Shown: positions 20,542 to 23,030, counted from the whole stretch's first letter. The stretch is DNA of 63,786 nucleotides, filler included, from Olpidium bornovanus S191 (GCA_017911155.1; 27 parts of 27 records of this genome joined end to end with filler, not necessarily neighbours in it); one strand, 5' to 3'. Numbers and translations: made by a program. Notes: generated by a model not told the origin, from the sequence alone.

Positions 20542-21433
20542 TGCTTCTTTCTCTTTTTTTGGGAGAGCGGGCGGGGAAGCGGGGGAATGGGTGACACCAC
20601 CCGCCAATGCGCACCCCCGGTGAGCTCGACCCCGGACGATCCCCCCCCCGGTGGGGAAAAAGCTGGAGAAAAAAAAAATACGAAAACCTCAAGACAGCTT
20701 CCACCAACAAAAAAAAAAAAAAAAAAANNNNNNNNNNNNNNNNNNNNNNNNNNNNNNNNNNNNNNNNNNNNTTAATTAATTAANNNNNNNNNNNNNNNNN
20801 NNNNNNNNNNNNNNNNNNNNNNNNNNNAAGACAATTTGGTCATCGACCTCAACCGAATACCTGCCTTTTAAAAGTCTGTTACAGTTGATTCATTAGAACG
20901 TGTAAAGCTTCTAGCTCCACGGCAACCAAATTAACGAGTTTAGCCATGTGTCTGTGTTGTTCATCCATTCCTGCGAATCTGGTCCGCTCGCCTGAAATAC
21001 TGCGCGGCCAGACTTATTGCTGACCTCGACTCCATGATCGTTTCCAGAGATATTTTGCGATTACCGATGCCTCTTATCCATTGTGTTATCGGCCAATCGA
21101 ACACTTAAAGCAATCGGTGTAAAAATTTTGGACTTTGTTCGATCCAGGCCACTTTGGCTGCTATGGGGTATCTTTCCCGAGAAAATCTCTCGAAACAGGC
21201 GTAAATCGAGTGCTGCCTTTCGGCGCTTCTGTTCTGGTGTCCGATATTAAGTAACCCGGCAGGTGGATGATACCGGCAAACGTGCTTTGATTATCACCCC
21301 GCTCGCGCCCCATTTGGGAGAAAAAGAATTGATTGGAACGGCTATAAAACGGGATATCGATGACTTCTCAGGAAAGCGAGTGTGCCCGGCACGCCTCTTG
21401 GAACGTTGCAATGCTTAAATAACCTTGCCAACG

Positions 21434-21790
21434 TCAGTACCAGCCGCCGTAGCCCTTCCCCTTCCCATAGCCGCCGTAGCCCTTGCCTTTCCCCTTCCCA
21501 TAGCCACCGTAGCCCTTGCCCTTCCCCTTCCCATAGCCACCGTAGCCCTTCTTTCCGTATCCGCCGTAGCCCTTCTTCCCGTATCCGCCGTAGCCCTTCT
21601 TCCCGTAGCCCTTCCCCTTCCCATATCCGCCGTAGCCCTTGCCCTTGCCCTTCCCGAATGCGCCATACCCGTTTCCGCCGGGCGGGAACGGCTCGGGGGC
21701 CGGGGCCGGGGCCGGATCGGGATCAGGGGCGGCGGAAACGACCTGCGCGAGGACAGCGACGGCGGCGAGAACGATGACAGCGATCCTCAT
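21434..21790 (-). CDS. Secreted Gly/Lys/Tyr-rich repeat prepropeptide (118 aa)
   Basis: Signal peptide MRIAVIVLAAVAVLAQVVSA, pro-segment APDPDPAPAPAPEP, then 84 aa with 42 G, 19 K and 16 Y, including six GYGGY and one GYGGW. Repeat indels are all multiples of 3. Upstream TATAAAA on the same strand at about 22035-22041. Confidence 0.85.
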   Translation of the reverse strand: MRIAVIVLAAVAVLAQVVSAAPDPDPAPAPAPEPFPPGGNGYGAFGKGKGKGYGGYGKGKGYGKKGYGGYGKKGYGGYGKKGYGGYGKGKGKGYGGYGKGKGKGYGGYGKGKGYGGWY

Positions 21791-23030
21791 GATTCTTTGT
21801 GCTGTTTTCTTTTGGCGGACAGTAACGGACGTTTTGCGCTGTTTTCGCACGAGGCAGCCAAGGGGGTTGGGGAAAGAAACGCGCAGAACAGAAACAAACT
21901 GTCAAATGAAGTCTTTGTGGCACGCCCTGTTGTACTTTCGTTGGGCGCGGTAAAACCACGCCAACCCACCTGCTTTAGTGACTGGGGCTTCGAAGACACT
22001 GCGGTTCAAAAAAAAAGAGCAGAAGGGGAAAGGGTTTTATACCCGCCGGCAACTTCTGATCGTTGACGCACCTGCGGCCGGCAACCCACCCTCGGTCGCA
22101 CCCGCGTGCGGCGTTTCGTTTTAAACGCCTACAGTAAAGTGACGCCACTTTTCAGGGCATTCGACGCAAATTAGATAAAATTACAGCGACAGCGTGGAGG
22201 AGTGAAACGAGAATCGTCGTTTTTTCCCGCCCCTTGCAGAGAGTGAAACAAAAGTGGGTCATTTTTTCCCGCCCCTTGCAGATTGCAAACGATTCGCAGG
22301 TTGAAAAAATAAGGAGCGGTGTTGCGAGGCGGCATTGGCCACCTCAGCTTCTCCTCCCGCCCTCACTCCCGTACCACACAGCTGCTCCCGCGTCCCGTCT
22401 CCTCCAGCATCCCTGGATGGCAAAAGTCAGTCCCTCATTGTTTCTCCAACCGCAAGCTGCTTTGGAGGCGAAATATGACGCCGCAGGCGACTCACCCATA
22501 GCGCCCCGAGTTGACGCGGCATTCTCCCTCAAAAATGACGCACAGGACAGCTTGCTAATCCGCGTCGGGCTGCCTAATCCTTTTTTTTGTAGCAAGGTTC
22601 TGGAAGGGGAGGCTGTTGGTGTGCGGCGGAGATTCCGGTTTCAAATTCATTCGCGAAAGCGGCGACCAATTTCGCAAGCTTTGCGCTTCCTAAGTTAGCC
22701 ATTGAGCGCATGGCCGCTCTATCCAGCAATCGTCTTTTTTGGAACGCGCATCACGCACAGGGCAGGTGCGGTTTGGGTCGCAGTTGTGCATTGTTTGCAG
22801 CCACTGGAGCATGACAAATATGACGGGGAGGCCGCTGGAGAATGGATAGGCGGGGGGAGAAAGAGGGGGCAGGCCCGAAAGAGCGCCGAAAGCGCGGACA
22901 TTCGTCAACGCCGCTTGCAAAACTTTCGGGNNNNNNNNNNNNNNNNNNNNNNNNNNNNNNNNNNNNNNNNNNNNTTAATTAATTAANNNNNNNNNNNNNN
23001 NNNNNNNNNNNNNNNNNNNNNNNNNNNNNN

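Follow-up and report, generated by a model that had tools for sequence, protein, structure and literature searches.

The analysis described here covers a 2.1-kb piece (positions 20828-22930; 54% G+C) of the window, i.e. of the whole stretch of DNA of 63,786 nucleotides, filler included, and the locus within this piece is a complete eukaryotic gene, which is real and transcribed and which encodes a small putative secreted protein. The gene is located on the minus strand, and its 118-aa open reading frame (ORF) extends from an ATG at 21790 to a TGA stop codon at 21436-21434. A TATA box (TATAAAA, 22035-22041, minus strand), which is read from the sequence and to which a function is assigned from its position only, is found ~70 nt before the point at which exon 1 ends. 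This exon is non-coding and forms the first part of the 5'UTR (21970-22010, minus strand); its portion from 21970 to 21994 is present in a transcript contig from the public run X6, and its start near 22010 is placed from the position of the TATA box. It is followed by a 5'UTR intron of 131 nt with GT..AG borders (GTGGGT...ACAG; 21839-21969), as indicated by the joint 21835/21970 in the X6 contig, and then by the second exon, which begins with the remaining part of the 5'UTR (21791-21838; from the sequence and the transcript contig) and contains the whole coding sequence. No upstream ATG is present in this part of exon 2 or elsewhere in the spliced leader, and the first AUG of the mRNA is the one that opens the signal peptide. 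The coding sequence consists of three parts, viz. the signal peptide (residues 1-20; 21731-21790), a pro-segment (residues 21-34; 21689-21730) and the predicted mature protein (residues 35-118; 21437-21688), and after the stop codon a 3'UTR of ~130 nt (21304-21433) extends to the limit of the transcript contigs (X1 contig, 21304-21484). An oomycete-like initiator motif (TCATTTG...CAGTTT) was also considered as the start site and was rejected, as it falls inside the intron.

Within the piece, no recognisable gene is present in the flanks of this locus, and an Rfam search of the piece gave no match. A 25-nt direct repeat, whose two copies (22216-22240 and 22258-22282) are 96% identical and 42 nt apart, is located further upstream, ~200-270 nt from where the gene is inferred to start; on the gene strand it reads ...GGGGCGGGAAAAAA..., resembling GC-box/E2F-type sites, and it may have a cis-regulatory role, either in this promoter or for a divergent neighbour. 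Beyond the direct repeats there is an ATG-started open frame on the plus strand (22421-22698; part of a 154-aa mechanical ORF), for which no transcript was seen in the two runs examined.

The original prediction expected a transcript from this locus, and it is found both in the contigs of the runs X1 and X6 and in the word matches of public runs. In seven public runs bearing one species label, ~0.2 of the words sampled from the 2.1-kb piece are present, which is roughly the portion of its length (about a quarter) that the transcript occupies, and when the gene is taken by itself, the share of its words reaches 0.80-0.87 in four runs. The contigs of X1 and X6, which come from different studies, cover only 21304-21835, plus the spliced leader in X6, and the flanks are uncovered; run X1 was tagged 'DNA?' by guess and it behaves like cDNA. 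The orientation of the spliced transcript is the same as that of the ORF. In one X6 contig, position 21835 is followed by 11 letters and then by 21970-21994, and these letters resolve as an 8-nt insertion together with 21836-21838, after which the splice removes 21839-21969. The 8 extra nt present in the X6 transcripts (ACTCCTCG, gene strand) lie between 21836 and 21835 and are absent from the assembly; X1 probably also carries this insertion, as judged from its 4 unmatched end letters, and the difference is either a strain polymorphism or a small assembly error. Run X1 also shows a single A>G difference in the 3'UTR, at 21337. Two other contigs of X6 diverge from the assembled gene, viz. one with a loose end at 21603, in which a later repeat follows immediately upon ...PAPAPAPEP and the FPPGGNGYG start is missing, and one with a loose end at 21402, which diverges 32 nt past the stop codon; these contigs suggest one or more additional versions of the gene, paralogous or allelic, that differ in repeat number. 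Two raw-read polyA/cDNA runs of the same species label yielded no reads in the ~6% that was sampled of each, which hints at condition-specific expression of this mRNA, an apparently abundant one. Word matches in public runs also point to putative orthologues under eight other species labels, the RNA runs of other species sharing 4-22% of the words of the gene.

The counts given in the original prediction for the leader of 20 aa, the X-Pro run, the tail of 84 aa and its repeats were all exact upon recounting. The leader begins with Met-Arg, followed by a 13-residue core of Ile, Ala, Val and Leu (mean Kyte-Doolittle hydropathy of 3.3) and then by Gln-Val-Val-Ser-Ala, and residues 21-34 form seven X-Pro dipeptides (AP-DP-DP-AP-AP-AP-EP) with a net charge of -3. 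The tail, whose N-terminus is FPPGGNGYG, contains 42 Gly, 19 Lys, 16 Tyr, 2 Phe, 2 Pro and one each of Asn, Ala and Trp (i.e. 50% Gly, 23% Lys and 19% Tyr); Asp, Glu, Arg and His are absent from it, and Lys is its sole type of charged residue. The motif GYGGY begins at residues 52, 66, 74, 82, 93 and 104 and GYGGWY at residue 113, the linkers being either GKK or GKGKGK (three of each), with Lys-Lys pairs at residues 64-65, 72-73 and 80-81. The predicted mature part has a mass of 8.3 kDa, a pI of 10.0 and a net charge of +19, or 0.23 charge per residue. In the coding DNA, units recur in tandem with periods of 24 and 33 nt, and the part encoding AP-AP-AP is a (GGGGCC)3.3 microsatellite (21696-21715). 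Because the repeat DNA is open in five of the six frames, an open frame proves nothing here by itself. It is only in this frame that an ATG is followed by a signal-like leader, and the GC content of third codon positions (GC3) of the ORF is 0.82 compared with a G+C content of 0.54 across the piece. Further, the 30 pairwise differences among the six GYGGYGK units are, barring a Gly/Lys swap, all in third positions and synonymous, with no difference in first or second positions other than the Gly/Lys alternation of the linkers. Selection acts on this reading frame, and the synonymous-only differences between the units are its signature.

Entry into the secretory pathway is very probably directed by the leader, which would then be cleaved off after Ala20 (Val-Ser-Ala / Ala-Pro), a cleavage site assigned by the -3/-1 rule and not by a trained predictor. 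The hydropathy of the leader and its Val-Ser-Ala site, read by this rule, agree with the signal peptide that was originally proposed. A cut after Ala20 places all seven X-Pro dipeptides in phase, and the neighbouring bond is disfavoured for signal peptidase because it would have Pro at +1. The run of dipeptides then ends, after Glu-Pro, at Phe-Pro-Pro. Pairs of the X-Pro and X-Ala type are reportedly removed stepwise from promelittin by dipeptidyl (DPP-IV-type) cleavage (Kreil, 1980), and pro-alpha-factor is said to undergo dipeptidyl processing by Ste13 alongside Kex2 cleavage (Julius, 1983). If the pro-segment described here is handled in the same manner, a dipeptidyl aminopeptidase of the Ste13/DPP-IV type, either in the Golgi or secreted, would remove AP, DP, DP, AP, AP, AP and EP in pairs. 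Bonds of the X-Pro-Pro kind resist enzymes of the DPP-IV class, and due to this the trimming should halt at FPPGG. We consider it somewhat more probable than otherwise that the X-Pro run is trimmed stepwise and that the trimming halts at Phe-Pro-Pro. However, the pro-part of promelittin is thought to neutralise its cargo, whereas here a charge of -3 cannot offset the +19 of the cargo; a role as spacer or timer seems likelier for the pro-segment than one as safety catch. The melittin-style character proposed for this segment is supported with respect to the in-phase run ending in X-Pro-Pro, but it does not extend to charge neutralisation as in promelittin.

Searches for relatives of this protein covered sequence families, protein collections, metagenomes and the literature. 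No Pfam family matched at E values up to 10, the PF07172 model for glycine-rich proteins (GRP) included, and the structural glycine-rich wall protein family, which had been named at the outset as the identification that would speak against the proposed peptide, was therefore not matched. Word-indexed homologue searches returned nothing, either with the whole protein (E <= 0.01) or with residues 1-48 (E <= 10). Of the 596 stretches that matched the pattern in a scan of metagenome proteins, none was confirmed by tblastn, and a degenerate DNA version of PFPPGGNGYG matched nowhere in the metagenomes scanned. The ESM Atlas provided only weak leads (<= 0.73), the top one of which, an oomycete 'mating-induced protein M96-3', was dropped, as its score is within the noise range. 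When 1.84 billion representatives were searched exhaustively with phmmer, 19 hits passed E <= 1e-3, the lowest value being 8.8e-8, and every one of them spans low-complexity stretches; in composition-adjusted BLASTP, for which two pairs were tested, the hit P0006 had a non-significant E value of 0.82 and P0012 produced no alignment. At the level of sequence, descent from any known family is not demonstrable. Full-text searches of a library of papers with exact repeat strings found nothing except a list of mollusc shell-matrix proteins. A loricrin-like protein of Phytophthora was considered as an analogue and rejected, as it lacks a signal peptide and contains only 12.7% Gly. We know of no fungus or protist from which a Lys-only GYGGY polycation behind an X-Pro 'fuse' has been described.

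Although descent is not demonstrable, 6 of the 19 phmmer hits share with this protein its layout, not its sequence, viz. a signal peptide, in-phase X-Pro/X-Ala dipeptides and a Gly/aromatic/basic tail. These hits are P0012 and P0001 from Penaeus indicus, P0011 from the copepod Eurytemora, and the unnamed P0007, P0015 and P0006, the latter three being from metagenome or SRA assemblies; the tails are acid-free except that of the Eurytemora protein, which has acidic residues. One member of the Penaeus indicus pair (P0012) is named neuropeptide-like protein 31, and the other is only 'uncharacterized'. In P0006, AP-NP-EP-LPP precedes a Gly/Phe tail containing GKGKGK, and the dipeptide run ends in X-Pro-Pro as it does here; its lower GC3 of 0.54 suggests that it may come from a different species. 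The called product of P0006 (L001, 1032-1562, a contig of Logan SRR32020236) has 176 aa, of which 77 residues are probable upstream non-coding sequence, and translation probably begins at residue 78, the Met with which the signal peptide starts, a TATAAAA being found ~85 nt upstream of it. The gene for P0006 has an ankyrin gene as its neighbour. Among the tails compared, a Lys-only GYGKKG composition is seen in P0002 and P0027 from the chytrid Blyttiomyces helicus, and P0026 shares the signal peptide of their family, which is a small multigene family with tandem copies. The gene model for RKO84336.1 (L004, 1662-2607, ML000224.1) appears to fuse two tandem genes, each with the same signal peptide, an intron right after it and GYGKKG repeats. 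A profile built on the protein described here also retrieved the plant proteins P0024 and P0025, of which P0024, with GGYGKGG repeats, was found at E = 7.8e-4.

The interpretation that we prefer, to which a rough probability of 0.45 is given, is that the trimmed, disordered polycation serves as extracellular material, i.e. as an adhesive or as matrix of the wall or cyst, and not as a ligand. The trimmed product would be an intrinsically disordered polycation of 8.3 kDa, carrying a charge of +19 and 16 Tyr in GYGGY blocks, which through cation-pi contacts of its Lys and Tyr and through electrostatic contacts would form a coat or condensate on anionic surfaces (e.g. wall polysaccharide, the substratum). 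Exposed Tyr could then be oxidised, either to DOPA (tyrosinase) or to dityrosine (peroxidase), which would cure the protein, and the cured protein would constitute an adhesive or a matrix protein of the spore or cyst wall. No tyrosinase, peroxidase or polyanionic partner is visible within the 2.1-kb piece. A material role fits better than a peptide of the NLP type because the tail is Lys-only, is 84 aa long and varies in repeat number, and the crustacean and nematode tails that were compared are shorter (32-55 aa), rely on Arg/His and have a lower charge per residue (0.12-0.16). The repeat of the sandcastle-worm cement protein Pc-1 is close to GGYGYGGKK; we know of no X-Pro pro-segments in Pc-1 or in the mussel foot proteins, and small Tyr-rich proteins are reportedly required for the oospore walls of Pythium oligandrum. 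In polycationic Lys/Gly/Tyr glue proteins (Pc-1, mussel foot), Tyr becomes DOPA (PMC9999432, PMC4275877), and a glycine-rich protein of tick cement is described as phase-separating (PMC11794139). By its composition, the protein described here displays the features of the class of DOPA adhesives, being basic, repetitive and dominated by Gly, Lys and Tyr, with its secretion predicted. Against a material role, the best-known X-Pro pro-segments belong to antimicrobial and venom peptides and not to adhesives, and the named analogues of the same architecture are annotated as NLP-31-like, i.e. as a defence/neuropeptide class. It is also conceivable, and to us rather improbable, that an underwater glue or cyst coat of a microbial eukaryote, perhaps a zoosporic fungus, has converged on the Lys/Tyr/Gly chemistry of the sandcastle-worm and mussel adhesives, with the X-Pro 'fuse', which a dipeptidyl aminopeptidase would remove, keeping it inert during secretion; if this were the case, it would be the first polycationic adhesive of the DOPA/dityrosine type described outside animals, together with a mechanism for its activation. 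An adhesive or wall-curing polycation of this kind would offer a short and genetically simple handle on the sticking and hardening of zoospores and cysts, and an adhesive would be a microbial counterpart of the marine animal glues, useful for biomaterials.

The main rival of the material role is that this gene encodes an antimicrobial or defence precursor, whose trimmed cationic Gly/Tyr tail would bind to microbial envelopes and damage them, as proposed for NLP-29/31, the caenacins and the crustacean glycine-rich antimicrobial peptides (AMPs). We view this as possible and, on the whole, doubtful. X-Pro pro-segments are classic for melittin-type peptides, and the best architectural matches are of the Penaeus 'neuropeptide-like protein 31' type with X-Pro/X-Ala pro-segments of their own; however, to our knowledge no glycine-rich AMP of this type has come from a fungus or protist. 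The six YGGYG motifs and the strong basicity of the tail (pI 10.0, with 50% Gly) are also as expected, since YGGYG/YGGWG motifs are said to typify the NLP/CNC peptides (PMC6780910), although the terminal block here is YGGWY and not YGGWG, and in crustaceans activity has been measured for glycine-rich AMPs that have a signal peptide (PMC12387859). Against these points, no homology with NLP/CNC proteins beyond composition was found: the Caenorhabditis remanei protein P0016 is a phmmer hit over the repeats (E = 4.4e-4), and the shrimp P0012 was unaligned in the BLASTP comparison, in which P0016 was left out. In addition, the tail is about twice as long as the NLP/CNC-type peptides and is Lys-only where they use Arg/His, and direct antimicrobial tests are lacking for most NLP/CNC peptides, as noted in a review (PMC6780910). 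Hence, of the NLP/caenacin reading that was originally put forward, the analogy is reasonable, as a pro-segment with a Gly/Tyr tail recurs in the NLP-31-like shrimp proteins, but family membership fails the homology test. If the protein should be antimicrobial, it would extend both the NLP-type Gly/Tyr peptides and the dipeptidyl pro-segment beyond animals.

The remaining alternatives to extracellular material or an antimicrobial peptide are considerably weaker. Ala-Pro repeats are glycomodules of arabinogalactan proteins (AGPs), and the X-Pro run, by its resemblance to them, could be retained as a module for hydroxyproline O-glycosylation, the protein then being a plant or algal glycine-rich wall protein of chimeric build, with which the retrieval by the profile of plant PF07172 proteins such as P0024 is consistent. 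However, the Pfam GRP model has no match here, the dipeptides of the run keep exact register with the predicted signal cut and lead up to X-Pro-Pro, as in P0006, and the genome was tentatively placed among the zoosporic fungi in the original prediction, all of which make a retained glycomodule quite unlikely. It is even less to be expected that the protein is a precursor of several peptides, from which signalling peptides of the GYGGYG type would be set free by cleavage at each of the three Lys-Lys pairs and possibly also inside GKGK. The three pairs are evenly spaced and flank GYGGYG units, and alpha-factor combines X-Pro/X-Ala trimming with Kex2 cleavage; but in the Kex2-repeat class the repeats are bounded by KR/RR, and this tail, with three KK pairs and no Arg, is devoid of the KR/RR sites that Kex2-type convertases prefer, due to which the release of GYGGYG at KK, as envisaged earlier, is unlikely. 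Most of the linkers, moreover, are GKGK and not dibasic, no dipeptide spacers follow the KK pairs, and the units released would be nearly featureless. That the locus is not a protein gene at all, but a transcribed GC-rich tandem repeat fortuitously open in several frames, is highly improbable, for even though openness in five of six frames and the lack of a provable homologue would fit it, the differences between the units are synonymous-only in this frame, the signal peptide opened by the first AUG of the spliced mRNA is canonical, and the same three-part layout occurs in many unrelated organisms.

Overall, the protein is built like known kinds of proteins, viz. precursors trimmed by DPP on the one hand and secreted cationic peptides or adhesives rich in Gly and Tyr on the other, and it is an orphan. 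Its membership in the NLP/CNC, plant GRP or Kex2-repeat classes is rejected, because each of them fails in a defining feature that was tested. The layout of a signal peptide, X-Pro dipeptides and a Gly/aromatic/basic tail has arisen repeatedly. Low-complexity filters hide genes of this kind from standard annotation, and an exact lookup found the protein to be absent from a collection of 15 billion proteins.

The relationship of this protein to known systems can be considered for each of its parts. Its pro-segment is similar to those of prepromelittin, cecropin and alpha-factor in consisting of an even X-Pro/X-Ala run that begins right after the signal cut and ends at a non-substrate pair, whereas the cargo is a repetitive, disordered polycation in the present case and an amphipathic helix or pheromone in theirs. 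The Penaeus indicus proteins XP_063597151.1 and XP_063597306.1 (P0012, P0001) resemble it in their signal peptide, X-Pro/X-Ala run (e.g. MP-EP-DP-VA-DP-DP) and acid-free, basic Gly/aromatic tail; however, their tails are of 36-55 aa and contain Arg/His and no Lys, with ~0.13-0.14 charge per residue compared with 0.23 here, and they are animal proteins whose names derive from automatic annotation only. Nematode NLP/CNC precursors are not known to have an X-Pro pro-segment, which P0016 also lacks, and they are Arg-based and often processed at RR/KR. In other respects the nematode NLP-29, NLP-31 and CNC peptides are alike in being secreted, basic and rich in Gly and aromatic residues, with YGGYG motifs (PMC6780910). 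The class I/II glycine-rich wall proteins of plants (PF07172) have in common with this protein a signal peptide and GGY/GK repeats, but their Pfam model does not match it even at E = 10. The Blyttiomyces helicus family (RKO84336.1 and BDK51DRAFT_28272/_33075; P0002, P0026, P0027) shares a signal peptide and Lys-only GYGKKG repeats, P0002 being 80% identical across the repeat stretch. However, the members of this family have no X-Pro pro-segment, an intron follows their signal peptide, some Asp/Glu is present in their repeats, and two of them carry a long C-terminal domain rich in Asn, Lys and Asp; on sequence grounds, common descent of this family with the present protein is not demonstrable. 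Lastly, with the sandcastle-worm cement protein Pc-1 and the mussel foot proteins, which are products of animal glands and to which its likeness is compositional only, this protein shares the character of a secreted, basic and highly repetitive protein that is dominated by Gly, Lys and Tyr.
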